Source: Octopus bimaculoides
Lineage: Eukaryota
Direction: 5' to 3'
NCBI RefSeq assembly: GCF_001194135.2
Contig: NC_068986.1
Location: forward strand, 77,275,003-77,339,002
DNA length: 64,000 nucleotides
Shown here: piece after piece, positions 6,001 to 64,000 of the stretch
Numbering within the stretch: the stretch's first letter is position 1
Layout: every line of letters begins with the position of its first letter
Translations under genes and position numbers: made by a program
The notes under the pieces: model-generated
Databases searched by the model: none
What the model saw: only the letters and a program-made list of their open reading frames with translations
What the model was told of the DNA's origin: nothing

Positions 6001-9000
6001 CACAAACTGGTGTTAACACCTGTTGTACTCTTGAGGCTAGTTATGAAATTTCATTACTCATTGCTAAATGTGGAAAAAATCATACTATTGGAGAGGATTT
6101 AATTAAACCATCAATATCAGCATTTTTTAAAACAGTCCTGGAAAAAGATAAGTTGTTCAAGCCATGCTACTCGGTAACAATACTGTTAGAAGAATAGATG
6201 AAATGAGTGAAGATATTGAAGTACAACTTATGGAAAAGCTGAAATCAAAAAAATTCTCATTACAAATGGATGAGTCAACTCTGAGACAGCGAGGTCGTAT
6301 TGCTAACCTATGCAAAATATATTGATAAAGGTGAATTTGCTGGAGAAATCATATTCTGCGAATCATTAACAAATATCTTTGAAAAACTGAATATGTTAAA
6401 TAAACAACTTCAAGGATCAAATAAAACTCTTATTGATGCTAAGATGAAGATATTTGGCTTTGTTACATTCATTGAGTTATGTCAAAAGAATATTTTTGCC
6501 AAAATTTTTAACCAGTTTCATTGGCTAAAAAAAATGTGTGGTGACCGATACTGCTGTACTTGTCATTGTGGATCATATGAAAATATTGGCCTCTGATTCG
6601 AAAGAAAAATTTTCTGATTTAAAACAAATTGATTTTCCAACTTGGGTGCTGCTGCCAATGCTAGTGGATATATGATGTTTCGATACAGTACCAAGAAGAA
6701 CTCTCGGAAATGCAAAATGATGAGGCAGTGAAAACTTTATTCAATATAAAAGGAGTGATGTCATGGCTTTGTGATGAGACAAGAACTAAATGCCCAAATT
6801 CAACCAACTTTGCAAAAAAATTGTTGTTACCGTTCCCATCTTCATATTTAGCTGAATGTGGCTTTAGTGCTGTAAATGATTTGTTATTGAAGAAAAAAAA
6901 AATCAACTGGATATCACTAAATGAGAAGACTTGAGACTAAAGCTGACTAAATTGGTGCCTAATCTAAAATCTCTCTGTAGCAGGCATGAAGCACAAGGAT
7001 CTCCCTAACTTTAGTATACTTATTTTATATATCTGCATTTCAGTTTTCTTGCTCGACACTGTTCTGTTTGGTATTATGATAGCGTACTTTGTCGTCGGCC
7101 CGACTGGATGAGTGACTGAACTGTGTGCCTCACCAACTGCCCCACTCATTATGTCTGTTAACTATTTATTTGTAGTGAAACAGCCCACTTCTCTGGCTTG
7201 GAGGTGTCCTCCACAACACCTCCAACTTGAGATTTTTTTCTACACAGTATATTTTTTTTCTCCCTCTATCACATAGAACAAAATCTTTTTTCAATCTCTT
7301 ATCACAGAGAAATTTCATACAGTTCTTCGATATACACCTGTCAACAATTATTTTTTTTCAACCCTATCTATTACACAGAACAAAATCCTTTTTTTAATTT
7401 CTAATCACAGAAGCATTAAATTATTACATAGTTCTCTGACACACATCCATTGGCAATTATTATTATTCTTATTTTTCAACTCTATTACACATTCAAACCA
7501 CGCTATTCGGATATATTCCACATACTAACACATGAGCTACCTGACTGAATTCCTTCATCAGACTTGTATTATTATGAAAGAAATATGTAATCAATCTGCC
7601 CATTTTCAGTTCCACAAATACACAATGTTTTGTTCTGGTCAAATGATTCTCTTTAATTTCACTTTGTCACAGTATTTCTTTGCTATTTTTACTTTTCTTT
7701 TTTCAAAGGAGTTTGCTGTTATTTCTGCACTCCTATTTTTTGTAACTTTCAAAGCTAAACGCAAAACAACAAAAAATGAATACTTTAATTTCACATAAAT
7801 TACTTAGTCATATTACTGCAGGAAATTACTCTGAAAGAAATTTTTGCAGAAAGGTGAATAGATTGATTACATATTTCTTTCGTTATGTTATCGCAGTTTT
7901 GTGAGATTTGGCTGTTATTTCTAGCATATGGATAGCCTGCTTGAAGGGCAAGGACGTAGAATTGGGAGGAGAGGGTGTTAGGNNNNNNNNNNNNNNNNNN
8001 NNNNNNNNNNNNNNNNNNNNNNNNNNNNNNNNNNNNNNNNNNNNNNNNNNNNNNNNNNNNNNNNNNNNNNNNNNNNNNNNNNNNNNNNNNNNNNNNNNNN
8101 NNNNNNNNNNNNNNNNNNNNNNNNNNNNNNNNNNNNNNNNNNNNNNNNNNNNNNNNNNNNNNNNNNNNNNNNNNNNNNNNNNNNNNNNNNNNNNNNNNNN
8201 NNNNNNNNNNNNNNNNNNNNNNNNNNNNNNNNNNNNNNNNNNNNNNNNNNNNNNNNNNNNNNNNNNNNNNNNNNNNNNNNNNNNNNNNNNNNNNNNNNNN
8301 NNNNNNNNNNNNNNNNNNNNTCTAAGTTATGGGTGAAAACCTCGGATCTTGTGAATTTTCCAAAGTCCTTTCCCCACCCCTTCGGAAAAGATTTTCCCCT
8401 CAAATTTCTTTATTACTGTAACGTTTGTTGTTTGAAAGGCATTTATATGAAATTTCATTAAAAAACCATTTTCCTAAAAGTTTTGAGAGAAAAACTTGGA
8501 TCTTGTAAATTTTCTGAAGTCCTCTCCCCACCGCCCCTATTACTTCCTGCGCATTTTTGTTTTCATATTCGTTTCCTACACATTTTTTACACCCGTTGCA
8601 CTATTTTTTTTTTTTTTTTCGTTTCTGGGTAATATTGTAAACATTTCTCTTTAATTTTTAATTCATCACCAAATTTTTCCTTGTATTCTGCGGTCATTGT
8701 TGTATCCTGCATATTTTTGAATTCTTGTCACCAAATTTCTTCTTGTATCCTGCGATCATTGTTGTATCCTGCGTATCTTCGAAGACTCATCGCCACTGTT
8801 GTGTCTTGCGTGTTTTTGAATTCTTGTCACCACTTTTACAAAGTGTTATGATTTTAAATATTTTCCCCTACATGTTGTTTAAATCCTTGTCGCCACTGTT
8901 GTCTTGCTTGACCCTGTTCTGTGTGGTATTATGACGACTTATTTCGTTGTTGGCCTGACTGGCCCAAACTGTGAGTGGCCAAACGGCGTGCCTCGCCGAC

Positions 9001-19500: not shown

Positions 19501-21749
19501 ATCTTTCATTGGCATGGAAATGTTTCTAACTTTCCTTGGTCAAAAGTGAGTTGCCAGCCTCATCTTTAAGATTGGCACTGGTCGTTATTTGTCTGCCAAT
19601 CAGATGGTCTGTAGTATCAAAATATCTGCAGATCATTGGTGTTGGAAACGTTCTCTACAGCAACCTGATCATTTAATCATGACCTAGATTTGCCATGCAG
19701 ACTCTCCTCTTTGTATTAATGAGGCATTGATGGTCAGTTGTTTGTGAAGAGAGTTGTGGTCTGCTTTTACTGTTCTCTTCTGTGTGACTTGCTCTAGCCA
19801 TGATTCTTTGTGGAGATGTGACTGCTTCTTTCTTTTTCCCCATGCAGGCTGTTGGTTTTCAGTATTTTGATGATTGACTACAGATGCTTTATTAGTTGAT
19901 GTAATTAGATCTGGATGTTGTAGAAAGGATGATGGTTGATGTAGAAAGCTCTAAAGGAGCAATAATCAGCAAACTACAAATGCAGTTTTGGGAGACATGT
20001 ATATAACATTCTCCATGTTTTTCACTTTGAGTCCAAATGATTTTTTGGTCTGTACATTTCTTAACCTGGGTACATCATAATCAGACCGACAGTTTCAGAA
20101 ATTGAAAATACCACAGCAACTGAACTATTTAGTGTATGCATAGAAAAATAAATGATAAACTAAGTTGATGGGTGGAGACAAAAACTCCTCCCCAAAACTA
20201 GAAGTGATGTCAAGAGAGCCCAGATGTGTGTTGTTGATGAGAAGAAAATGGCTTGCATTTTTCTGGGGGTGGATGGCGGTCATCAGAATTTAATTTCTCT
20301 ACTTGTTTTGAATTCAAGTGAGTTAAGAGTAGTATTTTTTTCTCCATGAGCACCCTGGAATCTCTGCAGAAGGTTGATATTCAAAGGTAGAATGAGATTG
20401 TTAAAGTACAGTTTGTTACTGGTTTCCTTGATTACATTTTAGTAGAGATGCTGTAATTGCCAGATAGTGGAACCATGATTGTGGTAGATTTGGTGACCAG
20501 TGCTAGATTATTAAACAAAACTCAAAATCTTGCAGCAGTGGCCATGATGGGACAATATAGTGAGATGACATACTTTAAGCAGAAATAAAAAGTGGGACAA
20601 CTGAACATTCCAAAAGAGGTGTTTTAAGTGTTGAGGGCCACATATGGTCAAGGAATTTCAAGAGCCCAGCCTAAATTGTTTTACTACTGATGGAATAGGA
20701 CAGGTTTTGTAGCCAAGGATATGGTCAGTCATGTGCCAAGAGCCACCCCATCATCAAGTACAGGCATTTCTTTATTGCCCACAATGAAAGTTTTGGTGAG
20801 GGGGAAAGAGGGGATCGATATTATCGATATGGATTGCATAGTCACTACAATGACTAAAGATGATACACCAGACGAGAGCCCATCTCACAGCCGGGATGAC
20901 CTTAATTATCGTTAAAAAAAAAAGAAACAACTAAAAAAGATGAGACATATTTTCCTGTTTCTTCGACAATCATCGCTTTTTGTCATAGTCGTAATATTTC
21001 TTTTTTTTATTTAATTTTACGTCATTAGGTCATATATTTGGGGAAAATATTGATGTATCTTCCTCTTCGTCCAAAAAGAAAAAAAAGAAAGTTTGGAGCC
21101 ACTCACTTCTTCTCTCTCACCCATCCACTCTTCATCCAANNNNNNNNNNNNNNNNNNNNNNNNNNNNNNNNNNNNNNNNNNNNNNNNNNNNNNNNNNNNN
21201 NNNNNNNNNNNNNNNNNNNNNNNNNNNNNNNNNNNNNNNNNNNNNNNNNNNNNNNNNNNNNNNNNNNNNNNNNNNNNNNNNNNNNNNNNNNNNNNNNNNN
21301 NNNNNNNNNNNNNNNNNNNNNNNNNNNNNNNNNNNNNNNNNNNNNNNNNNNNNNNNNNNNNNNNNNNNNNNNNNNNNNNNNNNNNNNNNNNNNNNNNNNN
21401 NNNNNNNNNNNNNNNNNNNNNNNNNNNNNNNNNNNNNNNNNNNNNNNNNNNNNNNNNNNNNNNNNNNNNNNNNNNNNNNNNNNNNNNNNNNNNNNNNNNN
21501 NNNNNNNNNNNNNNNNNNNNNNNNNNNNNNNNNNNNNNNNNNNNNNNNNNNNNNNNNNNNNNNNNNNNNNNNNNNNNNNNNNNNNNNNNNNNNNNNNNNN
21601 NNNNNNNNNNNNNNNNNNNNNNNNNNNNNNNNNNNNNNNNNNNNNNNNNNNNNNNNNNAGTGTGAATAGCAATATAAAGGCAATTGATGGAAGATATGTT
21701 GTTCTGTAGAGTGAATAGTACTGAAATATGAATGTCAGTTCTGGTAATC

Positions 21750-25520: not shown

Positions 25521-26570
25521 CTATAAGGGTAGGGATGGGATCAATGTTTGGCAGGGCAGGATGAGGGTTAGTGTCTGTATGGGAAGGGTTGGGGTTAACA
25601 TCAACGGATTGGGTTCTCTTTTATCAACTGTCTTCCACTCATTCTTTGTTACTTCTTCCACTTGGTTTTCCTTTTCTTCACAAGGCTCTTCACTCACTCC
25701 CACTGAATTTGTTATCGCAGGAGGTGGAGGTGTGGTTTCTTTTCTGACTGGCAGGACCACTGGTGCACTTTTGGGCAGTGGAGGGCACTCTGTTCTTATG
25801 TGGCCTTTCTGGCCACACTTGTAACAATGGGACTTCCTGCCCTCCACCACAACCTTCAGTCTTATTTCGTCACCCACTATGATGGTGTCTACAATACTTT
25901 CCAAATTCTCTGGGGCAGCCTGGATGACCATCTCCAGTCCTTGCCCATGCCAGTTTCTCTGCAGTATCCTTGTAGCCTGGAGGCCCACAATTTTATCCTC
26001 CATCCCAAGCAGTATTGCCACCACAAGACCTCTGGAGGGATTTCCTCAACCCTTATTCTGGAAGCATGCCTTCCAAGGTAAATTGGCAGAAGAACCACCT
26101 CATCTGCCCTAAGGGAGGTCACAGAATGCTGCCTGGCTTTCTCCTCAGATTGCAACCGCACCGCTACCGTTGTGTACTTCTTCCCTCTAGCAAGGTATGT
26201 AACGTCCTGCCAGATGGGTTCCAATCCCATTTCCACTTGTTGCCTTGTTGCAACCTCACTTCTTTTTGATTTCAAATTGTACATTCTGTATGCAATTGTT
26301 TTTGCCATTGTTGACCTTGTAACCTCACTAGGATGGGTCACCTTGTCTTCGTGGCCCTCTCTTCTCATAAAATTCTTATACCTCTCCAACTCCCAACTTT
26401 GGTCTGTGTTTAATCCAAGGTTCCAATTCATCGGAACCAGTGAACTGCGGGAGTATCAGTTTGGCAAACGGAGACCACACCTGCTCACTATCCAGGTAGA
26501 GCCAAAGATGCCTCAGTAAATCTCACCAGGAGCAACATTCGTCCTAAACCAGGACTGCCATGTTATGTTG
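25521..26570 (-). mobile_element. Tx1/L1-like ORF1 (copy 1), one frameshift near 26020
   Basis: ORFs 25889-26431 and 25521-26024 join; C-X2-C-X4-H-X4-C knuckle followed by P/E/K-rich tail with EWKTV motif. Confidence 0.75.
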
Positions 26571-27224
26571 GCAAACAATCTTTACTCCAAAGTACTGTTG
26601 CTGAATATCTCTCATGAGATTTACAAACAGTAATTTTCTAATTTATAGATCAGTGACAAGTTGTCACTTTGAAAACTATNNNNNNNNNNNNNNNNNNNNN
26701 NNNNNNNNNNNNNNNNNNNNNNNNNNNNNNNNNNNNNNTATTTTCAGTGAGAAGATTTTTTTTTTTTTTGAAGGGGAAACACTCCGAGAGTGCTCTATCT
26801 GAGTGGTTGTATTTGCTGTGTCCCTCTTGTCACTTTGTGAGGGAGATGCAAATGAAGTGCTGGGATAGGTTTAAGAGAAGTGTCATTGAGTAGACAGATC
26901 ACTCACATTTATGTAGAGCTGTGTGTTCATTAAGAGAAGTAAGACTGTGACCTTTCAAGATGTTTGGTAAGAAAGATAGCACTTTATGCTCATTACTAGA
27001 AATCATTTGATCTGGGTAGAAAGATGTATGCTTGGTAAGTTCACCATCATGAATTTTTTTTTTTTTTTTTTTTTTTTCAGTAAAATAGTTTTTAACTATT
27101 GATGGTGAGATACTATGGATATATTTTCTCAGTAAACTTTCCTTGCAGTGAACATTCATGTTCAACTTTCTTTGGCGAATTGGTGGCAGTGAACTTTCTC
27201 TGTGGTAAATTGATGGTGGTGGAC

Positions 27225-27570
27225 TTAATTAGAAAGAAGCAACTTGCAGTTATATTTGATGTGGACAAGGAGGAGGAGTCTCTTGTTTCCATGACTGAAA
27301 TTGAGTTGTTTTATAGAGGCAAGTTCTCCAGTCCAGACCTGGAGGTAGATTGAAGCATGTATCTGGCCTCCATCAAAATGGACAACAGCATGCTTTTAAA
27401 ACCACTCACCATTTTTGAGGTTTTGGTTGTATATTGTGGTATGAGATCCACTTCTGCAGGACCAGATGGAGTAATGTTCAGGGTGGTTCAATCATTGGGT
27501 CTTGTTGTCCTTCTTAATATATTTAACAGCATGTTGCTGGTTGGGAAGATGCTTGATGTCTTGAACCTAA
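27225..27570 (+). mobile_element. Old R2-like RT N-terminal fragment
   Basis: EIELFYRGKFSSPDLEVD*...LLKPLTIFEV...SAGPDG...LLNIFNSMLLVGKMLDVL aligns with IEDFYGGRFSTPGPEVDL...ILRPFSLEEI...LANICNCMLLARKVPDIL of the R2 at 32834. Confidence 0.7.

Positions 27571-28056: not shown

Positions 28057-28124
<68 letters not shown>
28057..28124. repeat. (CA)34 microsatellite
   Basis: Seen directly. Confidence 0.95.
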
Positions 28125-28539: not shown

Positions 28540-29160
28540 ACACTTCTTATTTTGCTCTGTGTTTTATGACATTTTTTGTGAATTCACCTTAGTGTCTTGC
28601 CTTTCATTGAACTCAGGACCTCTAGGTGACCCTCCTTTAGCATTAGTTACCGCTTTTATACGGTTAGGCATTGAATCAACTGGTTTCTTGCAGGTGCTAG
28701 GCACAATTTTACTCCATTCTTCTCTCAGCTTTTGGTACAAATGCTCTTTATTTTTTGTGTTCCTGATAACTTTACCAAGAGTCCCACATGGGTGCACAAT
28801 GGGATTTAGATCAGGACTTTGAGCTGGCTAGTCCATGGGAACAATACCCTGTGTCTCAAACCATTGATGAGTATTCTTTGCTGTATGACATGGAGCGTTG
28901 TCCTGTTGAAAGATAACACTGTTTTTCAACACGCCTGGATGCAGTTTAGCAATTGATGGCTCTAAAACATCTGATAATATAGAAACACAAGTAGCTGAAT
29001 TTATCCTTCCCTGACATAAAAACATTTCTCCGGGTCCTGTGTCAAACATGCAGGCCCACACCATGATAGAACCACCCCCATGTTTTACGGTTAGTACCAG
29101 ACATTCAGCCTTAAATGCTTCTCCAACTCTGCAATGCACAAAAGTTGCACCATATGTACT
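28540..29160 (-). mobile_element. Tc1-like transposase relic
   Basis: TVKHGGGSIMVWAC; FQQDNAPCHTA; *PAQSPDLNPIV (catalytic E lost); RIKAVTNAKGG. Confidence 0.88.
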
Positions 29161-29959
29161 GAAAACCTGAGTAAAAACATGAAAAATAGTATTAGCTTTA
29201 TGTTGGATACTTTTTTATATATTTTGGGCAACAAGCCAGTTACATTGTTTATATGTTGATTGATTACATATACTATCTTACCTCATAGTTACTTTCATTA
29301 AATCATATGACCTTTGACCATTGCTCACTGGTCCAATTTGAGTGGTTTTTGGCCCACTGAAGACGTTTTTCCATATTCGCTTCAGAAACCCATGGCTTCT
29401 TCCTGTATCTTTATTATAACCACAAGGGCTCAACATAGAGGAAGATGAGCAAGGATGGACAGGACACTGAAGGGACAACACATAGAACGAATATGAATGA
29501 AATAGTTAATATAACAATGAAATTATGAATGGTTGCATGTGCCCTTCATCACATACAGTAACATTAATCTTGTTTACAATCAATTGTTATCGAATTTTTA
29601 ACTAACATATAACTAACATGTAATATACCTTTGCAAGTCATTAATCTGTGTATTATCTGGCGGGTCACATTGGATTAGTGACGCATTGTCTTTCCTATGA
29701 AAACAGTTTTATTACTCGCTAAACTGTATATCCATTAACTGAAGGTTATCTGAAGGACAGCCCCTTATTAGCAGTATCACATCGTCCCAGTCGATTACTG
29801 ATTCCAACTTTTCGAAATCGACTTCGGACTGCATCATTCCTATGTTGCACCTTTTTGTCAACTCCTCATAGCAGTTCGGCTCTATTATTATTGCTTTTGT
29901 CTTATCCTAGTCATAATCCTTAGTTAATTTCACCTGTATTACTGATCTCATTTTCAAGA

Positions 29960-30256: not shown

Positions 30257-31195
30257 TCTCCGCTCCAGCTTGTTCAGCCACAAACCAGGGCAAGGCACGA
30301 CGGTTAGGCAAAAGGTTATCACCGATGCTATGAACACCTGCGCAACTTCTGCCCTTCCCAACAAGGATAACCTCCCAGACTACTTCTGGGCTATCTCTGT
30401 CACCTTGCTCGCCACCTCACTCCAGTTCTTCTCCACCTGGAGGTCCGGTCCAACCCAGGCCCCAAGCATTTTAACCAGGCCCTCCGTCCAGTGCCCGATG
30501 ACGCTGTTGGGAGGCATTGACTTGCCTCTCCAGGTGCCGAGTTGCAAGCTGACTGATTTTTCCTGGTTAATTTTCACCCTGCCACCGTCTTGTATCCTTT
30601 GATGGTGTCTTCTATGCGAGGTAGATGCCCTTCATCCGACATGATGATGGTGACATCATCCGCATATGCCGTCACATTTCTCCCATAACAAAGATCATGT
30701 GGGTCCACCCCCCACATCCCTCAATTTCCGCAGCAATGGCTCGAGCGCCAATACATACAGAATCGGGGACAGGGCAGCCCTGGCAAACCGAACGCTCGAT
30801 TGCGATGGGGTTTGAGAAGAACCCATTTACCCAGACTATTGATTCGATATTACCGTACATGGCTTTAATCCAGCCTCGGGAGGTTGGGCCAAATCCGGCC
30901 GTCCGATGGACCGCCGCCAGGTATCTGTGGTCAACCCTGTTGAACGCCTTTGACTGCTCTAAATGCACCAGTGCCCCACTGTTGCCATGCATTTTACCCA
31001 TCCGCTCTATGGTGTATCGAATGAGGTGAAGATTGTCCTGTATCGTGCTTCTCCCACCAGGTCGCCCATGACAACCCTAACTCTCTTTGTGAGCACCTTG
31101 GCCAAAATCTTTAACTCTGTGTTTAGCAGAGTTATGGGCCTAAAGTTATTAACATTATCCCCCTTGCTCGGGTCTTTCCTAATCGGTGTCGTCAT
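30257..31195 (-). mobile_element. Tx1/L1-like RT segment b (part of mosaic)
   Basis: FRPITLLNTELKILAKVL; LEQSKAFNRVDH; YADDV; KINQEKS; RAEVAQVFIASVI; frameshifted. Confidence 0.85.
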
Positions 31196-32090
31196 CCAGA
31201 AAATGCTGTAAGGTATCCCCATGGTCCAACGTCCCATCCCTCCCGAACAACACGACAAAGTGCTTGTGAAAGGCCTTGCATATCTCCTCTTGTCCTTGGA
31301 TCTTCTGTCCGGACTCATCTGCCAAAGATCCAATTGTAGCATTGATGCCACGACGGGTTTCTTCCAAGTGAGCCCATCTAGCAACATTGATACCTTCACG
31401 GCCCATTGCACGTGTCCTAGAAGTCTTGTTCAGCTTCCAGTAGCCAGATCCCTGTCTATGTATCTTGTCTATATTCATCCTACATGTCACTAACTTGTGA
31501 TCTGTGTAGGGTACGTAGGTAAACTGTGGACAACTAAAACTATGTCTATCTCTAGTACTTACGACTATCCTGTCTATGTAAGACCTGACCATTCCGTTGT
31601 TTCTTGCCCAGGTCCACACTAGAACGTTTGGGTGGTCAAGTCTATATCGATCTGCCAGCCTGAAACGCTTCAGCAGATTGATGAGGCATGAGTTTCCCTT
31701 TATATCTTTTGAGCCCACGCTATCCAGGCGTGCATCCACATTGAAGTTACCTAGTACAACGACTGTCCTCGATGTCATCAGGAAATTCTCCAGGTGTTGA
31801 AAGAAGTCAACCCATTTGCCTGCATTATCAGGTGCGTGGATGCCCACCAGCCTGAAGGCCTTACCACTGTCTGTCAGATCCAGAACAAGCAACTTGCCTT
31901 CTGGATCCACGAAGATTGTACATGTCTGCATGACCAGGCTTTTTCGGATCAAGACAGCCACCCCTCCGCTTCCTCCCTCTCGGCTAGGAGAAATTATATT
32001 CTTGTAGCCGTTCAGGAGTGCCAAGAAGGCCTGCAGCTTGTCCAGCTTGGTCTCTGTAACAACCATCACATCTATATCATGTGGCCTTGT
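31196..32090 (-). mobile_element. Tx1/L1-like APE endonuclease plus deleted linker (part of mosaic)
   Basis: VVTETK; GGVAVL; LVGIHAP; GNFNV; SYIDRI; TDHKLV; GYWKLN. Confidence 0.88.
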
Positions 32091-32094
32091 ATTT

Positions 32095-32830
32095 TTTTGA
32101 TGGCGTCTTCTACCAAAGGTAGCTGCCCTTCGTCCGACACGATGATGGTGACATCGTCCGCGTATGCCGTCACGCCTCTTCCATAACACAGATCATGAGG
32201 ATCGCCCCCAGTCGCCTCCAACCTTTGCAGTAATGGCTCAAGAGCCAGTACGTACAGAAGCAGAGCCAGGAGAAAAACCTGTCGCACCGAACCCTCAATC
32301 TCAAATGCCTTTGAGAAGAAACCATTCACCTGGACCACAGACTCGATGTTGCTATACATAGCATTGATCCAGCCACGAAAGGTTGGCACCAGTCCAGCAG
32401 CCGTGAGGACAGCCTCTAGATACCAATGGTCCACCCTATCAAATGCCTTAGACTGGTCCAAATTCACCAGTGCACCACCCTTGCCAGGAACTTTACTAAC
32501 CCGATCTAAGGTGTAGTGTACAAAGTGAAGATTGTTGTGTATCGTCCTTCCTAGGATGGCACAGGTTTGTGTCTCCCCAACCAGGTCACCCTCGACAACT
32601 CTAACTCTCTTGGCTAAAATCTTTAACTCTGTATTTAACAGAGTTATGGGCTGAAAATTATTAATGATATCTCCCTTGCTCAAGTCTTTCCTGACGAGTG
32701 TCACAACTCCCCAGCTCACAGATTTGGGAATTCTCTCATTCTGCTGCCAGTTCACATACACACCAGCCAGTATTTCCTCGAACAATTCTGGCATACTTTT
32801 ATAAAATTCGTAAGGAGGCATGGCAAGCAT
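32095..32830 (-). mobile_element. Tx1/L1-like RT segment a (part of mosaic)
   Basis: PYEFY; FQPITLLNTELKILAK; LDQSKAFDRVDH; YADDV; open frame. Confidence 0.9.
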
Positions 32831-32833
32831 AAA

Positions 32834-35460
32834 AATTATGCCATAGCGCAAAGTTTATATAGGACAAATAAGAGGAGGCTCCTTGCAATGATATTAGAGG
32901 AGGATGTAGATCAGGGATGCCCAATCCCTATGTATGCCATAGAGGATTTTTATGGTGGTAGATTTTCTACACCTGGCCCTGAGGTGGACCTTTCTGGCAG
33001 TCCTTCCTCCTCCATTGTCGATAGCGGTCCTATCTTGAGACCATTTTCGTTGGAGGAAATAAAAATTAGCCGTAGAAAGATGGATACCACCTCAGTGGCG
33101 TGCCCTGATAGTCTCACAGTTAGTGAAATTAAAGCAGTGGACCCATCCATCCTTGCTAACATTTGTAATTGCATGTTGCTGGCCAGGAAGGTTCCCGATA
33201 TCCTGAAGCAGGGTAGATCCGTTCTCATCCCTAAGAGGGCGGAAGATCCTTATGATCTTACCAGTTGGCGACCGCTAACGATATGCTCTGCGGTATATCG
33301 ACTTTTTTCAAAAATGGTCGCCAAACGCATGCTTCAGGTAACTCCCCTTAACCCGATACAAAGAGGTTTTAACCAGTCCGACGGCTGCAGTGAGAACACA
33401 TTTCTCCTTCAACAGCTCGTCGGTTGTGCGATGGGAAGACCAGCACAACTGAGAATACCGCGGTTAGAAGTGGCTTTCATGGATCTCGCCAAGGCCTTCG
33501 ACACAGTCTCACACTCTTTGATGTATGTGGGACTGCGGAGACTTGGGTTTCACGAGCACGTAATAGTGCTCGTGGAGGGGATTTATGAAGGTAGCACGAC
33601 TAAATTCTCAGTAGGAGGACAGATTAGTGAGCCCATTGATATTCACCGGGGTGTCGGACAGGGGGACGCGCTCTCGCCGATCCTCTTCACTATTGCAATT
33701 GATCCGCTGCTAGATACATTATCTGGTAGCGGGGATTTGTGTGTGGAGAGGATCCGGATGGATGGAATCGCGTATGCGGATGACTTGGCCCTAGTCACGG
33801 TGACGCGTGGGGGTCTCCAGGCTCTAGTAAATAGATGCTTGGAGTTCTTCCGCGATGTCGGGTTGAGGCTTAATGTCGGCAAGTGTGTGTGGTTCTCCAT
33901 CCGCGGCTTGAGCAAGACCTACCTTGTCAACGACAGTACCCCGCCGAGTGTTGATGGTATCACTATTAAGTCAGTAGAACCAGGGGAGAAAGTTTCATAT
34001 CTAGGATTAAATATACCCACGTGGAATTCTGACTCGAATCGGGAATTTACTTTAGATTCAGTGGAGCAAGTGTCGCTAGATATCAGTAGGATAACTAGGA
34101 CTCCGCTGAAACCCTGACAGAAATTCCTCTTGCTGCAGCAACTTTATCTGCCGAGACTTTTTTATAGTCTCGTACAGATACTGCCGTCAAGAGGAATTCT
34201 CGAGAGGCTTGACACGGCCATCTGCGTGGGTGCTAGAAAAATATTACATCTCCCCGAAACTACTTCCTCTTCTTTTCTTTACTGCAGCCGGCTTGATGGC
34301 GGGTTAAGTCTTCACCAAATGGTGAGACTTATACCAAAATGTGTCATCCGCCAAAATCTTCGCCTGCTGACCTCGGGGCATGTCTCAGTTAGGAAAGTTG
34401 CGGATTCTGCAGGATTAGCCGAACAGAACCAGCAACTTATAGTTTCCTTCAATTTGCCGTTGCTACCTGAGGGCGCTACAGAATACGACCCTGATATCCG
34501 GCTGATCCATACCCATAGATGGGCGGCTCAGCCGGTGCATGGTGTGTGTGTGGCGGCGTACCGAGGGGACACAAATGGCAATAGTTGGATTAGTAGGCCG
34601 GGTAGGATTGCTGAGGGGTGCTACTTGGGATTACTCAAGATGCGCTCCAACATATCCTAACCGTGAAACTCTGACGCGTGGAGCCCTAGGGGATCCCACG
34701 TGTCCGAGATGTAGATTAGGAGCGGAGACAATATCCCACGTCAGTGGAGTCTGTGTTGCTCTTAAAGCACCACGGCTTGCCAGACATAATAAAGTCTGTA
34801 ATCTGGTGGTGAAAGAGGCTGTAGCTCATGGTTGGAGTGTCAGTGTGGAGCCTTCCTATATTATAGGAGGCTCCAGGCTGATACTCGACCTGGTATTTAG
34901 CTGTCCGGATAAAGTAGTGGTCATTGACGTGACTGTCCGATTGGAGCAGGGAGATGCTTTGAAAGAGGCGTCTCTTGAGAAAGTGCATAAATACCGTCCG
35001 CTCGTTCAAATGCTTTTGCAGGACTTGGACCGGCTGGTAGAAGTGCATGGACTCCCAATCGGTGCCTGTGGTGCCTGGTGCCGACCTGCGAGTGTGGCAC
35101 TGGACACCCTGGGCATTCGTGACAGACCATTTCGGCGACTACTCAGCCGGACAGTTATGATATGTACATATAACATGCTGAGAGACTAGCTCCAGCATGT
35201 GAGGACTTAGGTATATACTGATCTTAGATCTAAAATACTTGAAAAGACAAAATAAAAAGAAAACCGATTAGGACAATCTGCAACCCACAAAAATAATACC
35301 ACACATCTTATTTTAGTTTGTTTTATTATTTTACAGAAGTGGTGTCGCCTCGGCTTTGAGCTGGGCCTTATGTCAAAAGTGTGCGGCACCAGGGCAAAGG
35401 ATTCAGTGGGACCACCCACAGAAAATAAAGGGAAAATGAAGACGAAAGTCAAGAAAGAAA
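32834..35460 (+). mobile_element. R2 non-LTR retrotransposon, 5'-truncated (RT, CCHC, restriction-like endonuclease, 3' UTR); one nonsense codon (34115) and one frameshift (~34650)
   Basis: YAIAQSLY; WRPLTI; QRGF..DGCSEN; DLAKAFDTVSH; GVGQGDALSP; YADDL; PLKP*QK; CPRC..ETISHVSGVC; RHNKV; DLV..VIDVTV..KVHKY; stop at 35189; 271-nt 3' UTR with A-rich end abutting the 28S R2 site. Confidence 0.93.
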
Positions 35461-35550
35461 TAGCCAAATGCCTCGTCATCTACTTAGTGACGTGCATGAA
35501 TGGATCAATGAGATTCCCACTCCCCCTATCTACTATCTAGTGAAACCACA
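35461..35550 (+). rRNA. 28S rRNA fragment (90 bp, pseudogenic) starting exactly at the R2 cleavage site
   Basis: TAGCCAAATGCCTCGTCATCTACTTAGTGACGTGCATGAATGGATCAATGAGATTCCCACT...GAAACCACA matches the conserved 28S sequence 3' of TTAAGG^TAGCC; three CpG>TpG changes; no further rDNA in the window. Confidence 0.93.
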
Positions 35551-35552
35551 CC

Positions 35553-35900
35553 TAATTTCAGGTGGTGGGGAGAATTTACTTTCCCCATTACTTTTGGTTA
35601 TTTTACCAAAAAGCAGTTGTATTTCTGCCTTTTTAACCTTAATATTTTCCTGTTGTTGACCAACAGCAGCGGCATAGTTCATTGTTACTGCTTCTGCAGT
35701 TGATGCCATAACGGCACTCAAAATTAATCCTCTACAACGAGGTAAACAAATACAGTTTATACAAATCCTTCCCCCATGGGGGAGGGTAACAAAAAACAAT
35801 ATCACAATAACACTATCCAAGCTGTTAAACGAACTTTCCAACAACAATAAATCCTGCAACAGGCAACAATAAATTAAACTCACCTACAGATCTCGAAACG
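35553..35900 (-). mobile_element. Putative Tx1/L1-like 5' UTR and ORF1 N-terminus
   Basis: MASTAEAVTMNYAAAVGQQQENIKVKK; the YAAAV motif is common at LINE ORF1 starts; cut off at the 28S junction. Confidence 0.4.
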
Positions 35901-42177: not shown

Positions 42178-62691
<20,514 letters not shown>

Positions 62692-63148
62692 CTGCATAAC
62701 AAAACAATAAAGAACAAAATAAAATAATAAAAATACTAAAGCAATAAGAAAAAAAAAAGAACAAAATAAAAATTAATTAAAATATCATTTTTACTCCTGG
62801 TTTGATAAAAGTTAATAAAATTGTTAAGAATTAATAAAATTAAGTAAAATATTACTCTTAAAACATTTTTATAATTCAAATTTTTCTTATATTGGTTTCC
62901 ACAAGAAACACACTTGGTTTATTTACTTATTTTGTTTTTATGGTTGGTGACTGAAGTTGGTATGGAGTGAAGATATTTCTTAGGTTAATGAAGAGGTTCT
63001 GCTGAAAGTATCATGGCAAACATAACTTAGCATGCCCCGCTAAATAAGGGCATCTACTCGTAAAGTCTCCAGGTAAAACTTCAGAAACACAACCAAATAT
63101 GCAAAAGAGCCAGCACAGGCAAATATGGTAGCCATTCAGTATACAGTG

Positions 63149-63454: not shown

Positions 63455-64000
63455 ATGGCAGCCACCAAGATTAGGATCGCCAGCGATGTGATCAGGCCTT
63501 TTAATGGCGAAGATGTGATGGCTTGGNNNNNNNNNNNNNNNNNNNNNNNNNNNNNNNNNGGATACGAAAAATTAGGCTCGTTGGCAAGCTGCAAGGAATA
63601 AGTGATGTGGCGAGTCTCATGGCTCTATACTTGGAAGGGAGCGCCCTGACCCTCTACCTAGAAATGGACAAGGAAGAAAGATTAAGTGCAGAGAACGTCA
63701 AACGGAGGTTGAGAGAAGCGTATATGGAGAGCGAGTACACTGCCTTCGTAAAACTAGGAACGAATAGATGGGGGGGAGAACAGGTGGATGAGTACGCGGC
63801 GGAAGTGCGAAGACTGGCCACGCTGGCTGGGTTTACAGGAGAAGGCCTGGACAGAGCGGCGCGGCTGGCGTTTGTAAATGGATTCCCCGACAACGTAGGG
63901 ATCCGATTGCAGCAGTTGCCTGGCGGGAGAAAGATGGCGCTCAGCGAGCTAGTAGCGCAAGCTCGCGTGTTGACACAGCATGTCGGACGGAAGTGGATAG
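63455..64000 (+). CDS. Gypsy-type gag, runs off the window end (interrupted only by the 33-N gap)
   Basis: MAATKIRIASDVIRPFNGEDVMAW|IRKIRLVGKLQGISDVASLMALYLEGSAL...RWGGEQVDEYAAEVRRLATLAG...FVNGFPD...LQQLP; no stop after the gap. Confidence 0.85.

Follow-up and report, generated by a model that had tools for sequence, protein, structure and literature searches.

R2, the textbook example of a retrotransposon with a specific target site, is now under development as a tool for gene insertion. Its 28S-specific members, including those of molluscs and cephalopods, consist of one open reading frame (ORF) with reverse transcriptase (RT), CCHC knuckle and C-terminal restriction-like endonuclease (RLE) and meet the 28S rRNA gene in a canonical 3' junction (PMC13188248); six R2s of cephalopods were catalogued in 2026 (PMC13188248). 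Copies outside the ribosomal DNA (rDNA) have been documented in five Drosophila species (Stage and Eickbush 2009, PMC2718515), and both non-specific R2 families and 28S-derived sequence in the 3' untranslated regions (UTRs) of fish R2s have been described (Kojima et al., PMC5035012). The subject of the present analysis is a 64,000-nt stretch of the Octopus bimaculoides contig NC_068986.1 (positions 77,275,003 to 77,339,002; hereafter the window), in which a decayed and 5'-truncated element, R2 as judged from its sequence, lies outside the rDNA and is still fused at its 3' end to 90 nt of the 28S rRNA gene.

The locus resembles each of the closest described systems in part. With the 28S-specific R2s it has the single ORF, the order of its domains and the 3' junction in common; it differs from them in its position outside an rRNA gene, in the broken ORF, in the missing N-terminal region and 5' ribozyme, and in the low similarity to the nearest proteins (~32%). 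The ectopic R elements of Drosophila likewise lie outside the rDNA, are often incomplete or diverged, and some of the R1 copies possess co-transcribed 28S ends (PMC2718515); however, these ectopic R1 insertions retain no more than 14 nt of 28S on the downstream side (and 7-28 bp on the upstream side) and have recognisable target-site duplications (PMC2718515), whereas here 90 nt are attached to an R2 and no duplication is present. LINE-1 3' transduction (LINE, long interspersed nuclear element) offers a further parallel, as donor-locus sequence there follows the intact 3' end of a 5'-truncated element; in contrast, poly(A) and target-site duplication are missing from the octopus locus, and the transcript would be an RNA polymerase I pre-rRNA co-transcript instead of an RNA polymerase II read-through product. 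The rDNA orphons or R2-bearing 28S pseudogenes, finally, are exemplified by R2-1_ECi of Eledone cirrhosa, whose 3' flank is a decayed 28S that has accumulated several substitutions and, beyond ~+97, an internal deletion (PMC13188248, Table S2); such pseudogenes therefore exist in octopod chromosome assemblies. They share with our locus the diverged 28S sequence on an R2 outside the functional array, but R2-1_ECi keeps both 28S flanks, in contrast to the 90 nt on one side only that are retained here. The octopus insert is composed of the following parts (coordinates of the window):

32813..35189, plus strand: R2 ORF remnant, 5'-truncated, with the pre-RT region, RT, thumb/linker, CCHC and RLE kept; its start lies somewhere in 32813-32837
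33227..34015, plus strand: reverse transcriptase domain (Pfam RVT_1), residues 114-376 of the ORF starting at 32888; YADD at 33773-33784
34115..34117, plus strand: in-frame TGA stop within the conserved PLKP(S)QK motif
~34650..34656, plus strand: frameshift (...KMRSNI / YPNRETLTRG) that fits the loss of 2 nt in an ATAT run
34701..34754, plus strand: CCHC zinc knuckle CPRC...H....C (CX2CX8HX4C), aligned to the CCHC of R2 proteins
34884..34994, plus strand: restriction-like endonuclease core (I)LDLVF ... VIDVTVRLE ... EKVHKY, from the alignment to 9nl2 and 9nl3
35190..35460, plus strand: R2 3' UTR of 271 nt with an A-rich end, after the stop codon TAG at 35187-35189
35461..35550, plus strand: 28S rRNA gene fragment, starting at the canonical R2 3' junction (TAGCCAAATGCC) and extending to +90

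According to its domains and nearest relatives, the element is an R2-clade non-long-terminal-repeat retrotransposon and now a pseudogene. The RT domain was recognized by Pfam with an E-value of 1.8e-26 (RVT_1), and the five best solved-structure sequences (nine PDB entries) were R2 proteins only (E 1e-107 to 1e-61): the top match was the R2 protein 9nl2 (E 7.8e-107), followed by 9nl3, 9dou (R2Tg) and 8gh6/8ibw (R2Bm). The remnant scored better against 9nl2, 9nl3 and 9dou than against the Bombyx R2Bm entries (E ~1e-62), while the L1 ORF2p reached only ~1e-10. The alignments with the R2 structures fall into two blocks, the first comprising the pre-RT region, RT and thumb, the second the CCHC and RLE (E 6e-26 versus both 9nl2 and 9nl3). 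The endonuclease is of the PD-(D/E)xK type and positioned C-terminally behind the CCHC, not an N-terminal apurinic endonuclease (APE); in its first motif Leu is found instead of the Pro of 'PD', with the acidic residues and Lys retained. The closest proteins in a collection of 5.8 billion sequences are teleost R2s (~32% identity), and a rough neighbour-joining tree (no bootstrap; no NeSL, R4, HERO and CRE outgroups) placed the element among R2-family proteins, two of which (P0021 in contig L002, P0035 in contig L003) were verified to lie at the 28S R2 site. The sequence-only reading, an earlier annotation of this DNA made from its letters without database searches, had proposed an R2 ORF with RT, CCHC and RLE, interrupted by one stop and one frameshift; the domains were reproduced by Pfam, the PDB alignments and the motif positions, and both lesions were located (34115-34117, where R2 proteins have the Ser of PLKPSQK, and ~34650-34656). 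Of its start position the R2 identity held, but the boundary had to be widened from exactly 32834 to the interval 32813-32837.

The 3' UTR terminates with ...GAAAGTCAAGAAAGAAA and the sequence from 35461 onwards reads TAGCCAAATGCCTCGTCATC...; the R2/28S junction is consequently defined as 35460|35461, immediately before TAGCCAAATGCC. Folding of the 3' UTR revealed no unusual stability compared with shuffled sequence (z = -0.99). The adjoining 35461-35550 aligns to positions 2280-2369 of the Rfam model LSU_rRNA_eukarya and matches real 28S with a blastn E-value of ~1e-27. In all three real rDNA contigs that contain R2 relatives (L001, L002, L003), the element ends directly before TAGCCAAATGCC of a genuine 28S gene, and contig L003 additionally comprises upstream 28S, 5.8S and 18S; among the R2s in Table S2 of PMC13188248, the junction ...TTAAGG|TAGCCAAATGCC is common to those of Octopus, Eledone, Sepia, Sepiola, slug, mussel and scallop. 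[quoted passage not shown]

Compared with reference 28S sequences, the 28S piece is identical at 82-83 of 90 positions. Its 7-8 differences, the number depending on the reference, include 23A>C, 33C>T, 49C>T, 62-63GT>CC and 81C>T against every reference, and additionally 41C>T, provided that the cephalopod-type sequence ACGG is present in the host; three or four of them (33, 49, 81 and, under this condition, 41) are CpG>TpG changes, and the non-CpG change amounts to roughly 4%. A GGATC variant is present as in cephalopods and also occurs in the rDNA contig L001. Because the 28S piece diverged in step with the R2 pseudogene, R2 and the 90 nt of 28S moved and decayed together as one insert. At +90 the GC content falls from 44% in the 28S piece to 32% in the flank, the CpG observed/expected ratio (o/e) of which (0.24) equals the host background; the abrupt end of the 28S sequence together with this drop in GC and CpG identifies the flank as host DNA and not as decayed rDNA. 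The next 26 nt (35551-35576, corresponding to 28S +91 to +116) are identical at 12-14 positions, with an empirical p of ~0.001 in the best combination of reference and window length but weaker support with mollusc 28S; this similarity is marginal and could reflect chance, microhomology that aided priming, or 28S sequence that continues in heavily damaged form. Insertion of another rDNA-specific element at +90 was considered and rejected: 28S sequence does not reappear within 28 kb, and the insertion positions of R1 are +60/+74 rather than +90. In sum, the 271-nt 3' UTR with its A-rich end, the precise fusion at the known R2 site, the loss of 28S identity after 90 bp and the CpG>TpG decay of the piece had all been stated in the sequence-only reading, and each was borne out by the comparisons above.

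Apart from this piece, 18S, 5.8S, 28S and 5S sequences are absent from the window: searches with real rDNA queries (blastn with word size 7, and nhmmer) gave 35461-35575 as the sole match. A Rfam scan of the whole window yielded no rRNA match at either threshold, but its E-value scan missed the 90-bp piece too and is weak for short fragments; for these, the blastn and nhmmer result was relied on. Neither upstream 28S nor other parts of an rDNA unit adjoin the R2 copy, which is not resident in a 28S gene. The earlier claims that no other rDNA lies in the 64 kb and that an upstream 28S flank is missing were upheld in these searches, the latter for the left junction as well as for the entire window.

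At its 5' end the copy is truncated: since residue 9 of the ORF starting at 32888 aligns to residue 317 of the 1121-residue protein 9nl2, approximately 310-340 N-terminal residues (zinc fingers, Myb) and the 5' UTR are missing. When 45 R2 proteins and the N-termini of 7 mollusc R2s were used as tblastn queries, no R2 N-terminus with zinc finger or Myb was detected anywhere in the window, and no Rfam match to the 5' ribozyme (hepatitis delta virus-like) was obtained in the window, the 5' end of the element being lost. Such 5' truncation is usual in R2 copies (PMC13580325). Homology to R2-1_ECi of Eledone, R2-1_OSi of Octopus and R2-1_ARu of Arion can be followed clearly from 32837 (YAIAQSLYRTNKRRL...) and plausibly from 32813; the alignment with Eledone R2-1_ECi extends to 32783, that with Arion R2-1_ARu begins at 32837. 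Directly beyond this boundary two LINE fragments are located on the opposite strand:

32099..32815, minus strand: LINE-B, an APE-type LINE fragment with RT residues ~461-702 only, truncated at both ends
30260..32090, minus strand: LINE-A, a related LINE copy with the APE domain and RT residues ~25-814, its 3' third missing

The 5' end of R2 thus adjoins the 5' end of the inverted LINE-B in a head-to-head arrangement, with at most ~22 bp unassigned: relatives of LINE-B read ...SPGLDGL|PYEVY, and the homology in the window begins exactly at PYEFY (32815). LINE-A and LINE-B belong to the same family, lie end to end and are 71% identical in nucleotide sequence; the sole named relative of LINE-B is from the cuttlefish Acanthosepion pharaonis (42%). 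As target-primed reverse transcription cannot make the 3' truncations of LINE-A and LINE-B, deletion or rearrangement must have acted at the locus. The head-to-head contact, the LINE 3' truncations and a second R2-like relic (see below) had been overlooked in the earlier reading. Two simple histories of this boundary were tried and rejected. An insertion of R2 into LINE-B is not in accordance with the right side of the locus, where no continuation of LINE-B was found beyond 35550; an insertion of the LINEs into a longer R2/rDNA segment would leave an R2 5' part or upstream 28S beyond the inverted LINE block, and none is present, with the caveat that LINE-A itself is cut at residue ~814 and that a later deletion could have removed such parts. 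Capture of the insert inside a DNA transposon was likewise rejected, as the search for terminal inverted or direct repeats produced only low-complexity chance matches.

As to the route by which the insert reached its present position, we tentatively favor an RNA-mediated one, in which a transcript reading through from R2 into the 28S was reverse-transcribed at a break outside the rDNA. R2 is made only as a co-transcript of the pre-rRNA (PMC12203849; PMC3414825); because the ribozyme cuts only the 5' end of this co-transcript, the R2 RNA would naturally carry a tail of downstream 28S. At a non-28S site, the R2 ribonucleoprotein, or the RT using an already existing break or an off-target nick, would then start cDNA synthesis ~90 nt into the 28S tail and copy the tail, the 3' UTR and ~2.4 kb of the ORF before an early stop results in the usual 5' truncation; the cDNA end would be joined beside or into the older, inverted LINE fragment, and later decay would account for the one stop, the one frameshift and the CpG>TpG changes. 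In support of this sequence of events, target homology is not required for R2 cDNA synthesis (PMC12203849), the R2 RT switches between templates in vivo (PMC3414825), and the insert has the shape of a target-primed reverse-transcription product, its 3' end being intact (271-nt UTR, followed by 90 nt of 28S) and its 5' end truncated. The R2 copies outside the rDNA and the ectopic R1 insertions with 28S ends in Drosophila (PMC2718515) serve as precedents.

Several features of the locus weigh against such a retrocopy. No direct repeat that could represent a target-site duplication brackets 32813-35550, and neither an A-tail nor another terminal signature follows 35550; the unusual left junction with the 5' end of an inverted LINE, in combination with the failure of the LINE to resume right of 35550, does not describe a clean insertion; the deletions in LINE-A and LINE-B could have produced both boundaries of the R2 copy; and the 90-nt tail exceeds the 14 nt published for an ectopic R1 several-fold. 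R2-type and break-primed insertions need make neither a target-site duplication nor an A-tail, so that the absence of both lowers the probability of a retrocopy without excluding it. The sequence-only reading had left the choice between a retrocopied read-through transcript and a captured DNA fragment, and both routes survived the tests: the ancestry of the insert as an R2 in a 28S gene stands, but sequence alone cannot separate the two.

The further surroundings of the insert comprise the following features:

27231..27566, plus strand: second R2-like relic, 112 codons long and containing one stop, separate from the main copy
25521-26431 and ~28600-29400, minus strand: gag-like ORFs with a CCHC knuckle (CYKCGQKGHIRTECP) and a Tc1-like transposase relic
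28057-28124: (CA)34 microsatellite
62291-62764, minus strand: exon for an ABC-transporter transmembrane domain (PF00664)
7983-8320, 21140-21658, 26680-26738, 57436-57445, 61865-61915, 63527-63559: N runs (scaffold gaps)

The LINEs, the R2 pieces, the gag-like ORFs and the Tc1-like relic together form a 10-kb cluster of transposon relics, and the R2 relic may lie near or within a host gene of the ABCC type. The second R2-like relic is positioned 5.3 kb upstream of the main copy on the same strand; it shares 34% identity with the main copy over residues 20-132 of the latter (E 4e-13) and ~30% with other R2 proteins, and it is AT-rich and therefore looks older than the main copy. The presence of two R2-like relics in one non-rDNA window suggests either dispersed R2-like families or a region that collects transposon debris. 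With respect to age, the R2 ORF has a CpG o/e of 0.77, compared with 0.58 for the LINEs and 0.18-0.32 for the DNA around them (genome-wide ~0.3, at a GC content of ~37%); provided that the starting CpG contents were similar, R2 probably entered the cluster last. In view of the one stop, the one frameshift, the ~4% non-CpG change and the CpG o/e, the R2 copy is a moderately young pseudogene.

Among the alternatives to the read-through retrocopy, a relocation at the DNA level has to be considered most seriously: a piece of an R2-occupied 28S gene would have been moved or captured at a chromosome break, or a displaced rDNA unit whittled down to 2.7 kb by deletions. The piece may have come from a fragment of rDNA or from an extrachromosomal rDNA circle, or have been moved by ectopic recombination. 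This route would readily deliver an insert that lacks target-site duplication and tail and is abrupt at both ends, and it is in line with the mosaic of relics around it (gag-like ORF, Tc1-like transposase, two LINEs, two R2-like pieces) and with the R2 flank of Eledone, which in a chromosome-level assembly is a decayed 28S with internal deletion (PMC13188248). LINE-A without its 3' third and LINE-B without both ends prove local deletion or rearrangement and, because these are truncations that only deletion can make, relocation is nearly as likely as the RNA route. It requires, however, two independent breakpoints, one in R2 and one at +90 of the 28S, that mimic the shape of a retrocopy by chance; moreover, no other trace of rDNA remains in the 64 kb despite sensitive searches, and the flank turns host-type in composition straight after the 28S piece.

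Alternatively, the 28S-like 90 nt might have become fixed as the 3' end of an R2 family that is dispersed outside the rDNA, and of which the present locus would be one ordinary copy; we regard this as unlikely. Non-target-specific R2 families do exist, and some fish R2 3' UTRs hold 28S-derived sequence, R2Hm-B maybe 15 nt (PMC5035012); the second R2-like relic at a distance of 5.3 kb hints at dispersal, and the same 5 positions of the tail differ from every 28S reference and could be family-specific. On the other hand, the fish cases use 28S from upstream of the insertion site, not downstream, and CpG>TpG changes, as expected of decay in place in a methylated genome, make up three or four of the differences in the tail. 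Nor was another copy found, the closest proteins among the 5.8 billion being ~32% identical: an exact-protein look-up, a homologue search and two metagenome pattern scans were all null in collections from which the host genome is seemingly absent or masked, and the null result of the tail-specific and junction probes in metagenome contigs counts little for the same reason.

The origin of the junction in an assembly artefact, i.e. the fusion of the end of an rDNA-resident R2/28S contig to unique DNA by a short-read assembler, is very unlikely. The scaffold contains N gaps and is probably a gapped assembly of the short-read type, 90 bp correspond to about one read length, and rDNA and R2 are classic assembly trouble spots (PMC13580325); but both junctions lie inside a gap-free block of 30.7 kb (26739-57435), and the divergence of the 28S piece, with 7-8 of 90 positions different from functional 28S, argues against a chimera with functional rDNA reads, as does the pseudogene state of the R2, unique k-mers being expected of both. 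Equally improbable is a twin-priming-like hybrid, in which one end of a staggered break was primed on LINE RNA and the other on R2/28S RNA until the cDNAs met 5' to 5': two 5'-truncated elements head-to-head with at most ~22 bp unassigned have the topology of twin priming, but LINE-B lacks its 3' end and stops at residue ~702 where LINE-A begins, so that the outer end is missing, the CpG content suggests that the LINEs are older than R2, and we know of no precedent for two different elements joined in this way.

A side observation concerns the rDNA contig L001 that served for comparison of the junction. At 4754-9795 of L001 (ENA contig ctg105520), an ORF of the R2 superclade (P0026, 1264 amino acids) starts just after position 1116 of the 18S model; this element may be inserted in the 18S gene in an R8-like manner. 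The rDNA unit of the same contig also contains an R2-type element that ends at TAGCCAAATGCC in the 28S, plus a 5S gene in the spacer.

R2 copies outside the rDNA, R elements with 28S flanks and cephalopod R2s have all been published already, the former two being known since 2009 or earlier. The sequence-only reading had taken the locus as documentation of a 28S-specific R2 lineage in a probably cephalopod genome; this stands with regard to an R2 at the canonical 28S site and does not with regard to novelty, as six cephalopod R2s are contained in PMC13188248. Mildly new is the length of the 28S tail on an ectopic R2. The locus itself is a fairly ordinary decayed relic and shows that R2 occasionally departs from the rDNA and takes part of it along. 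The 90 nt of downstream 28S are direct evidence of a progenitor at the canonical site, and the copy marks a mollusc R2 lineage, probably of cephalopods, that is ~32% identical at most to the entries of the protein databases searched. If, in accordance with the tentatively favored reverse transcription of a read-through transcript, the move was RNA-mediated, the template carried a long rRNA tail. It is possible, though we would not call it probable, that the 90-nt tail records the behavior of R2 in vivo, in that ribonucleoproteins with read-through tails of at least ~90 nt copy from within the tail at non-28S breaks and thereby transduce rDNA; in a stronger form, the tail would be the fixed 3' end of an escaped R2 lineage. 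Because R2 is being engineered for gene insertion, natural examples of its off-target landings and of the form of its template RNA are of some value.

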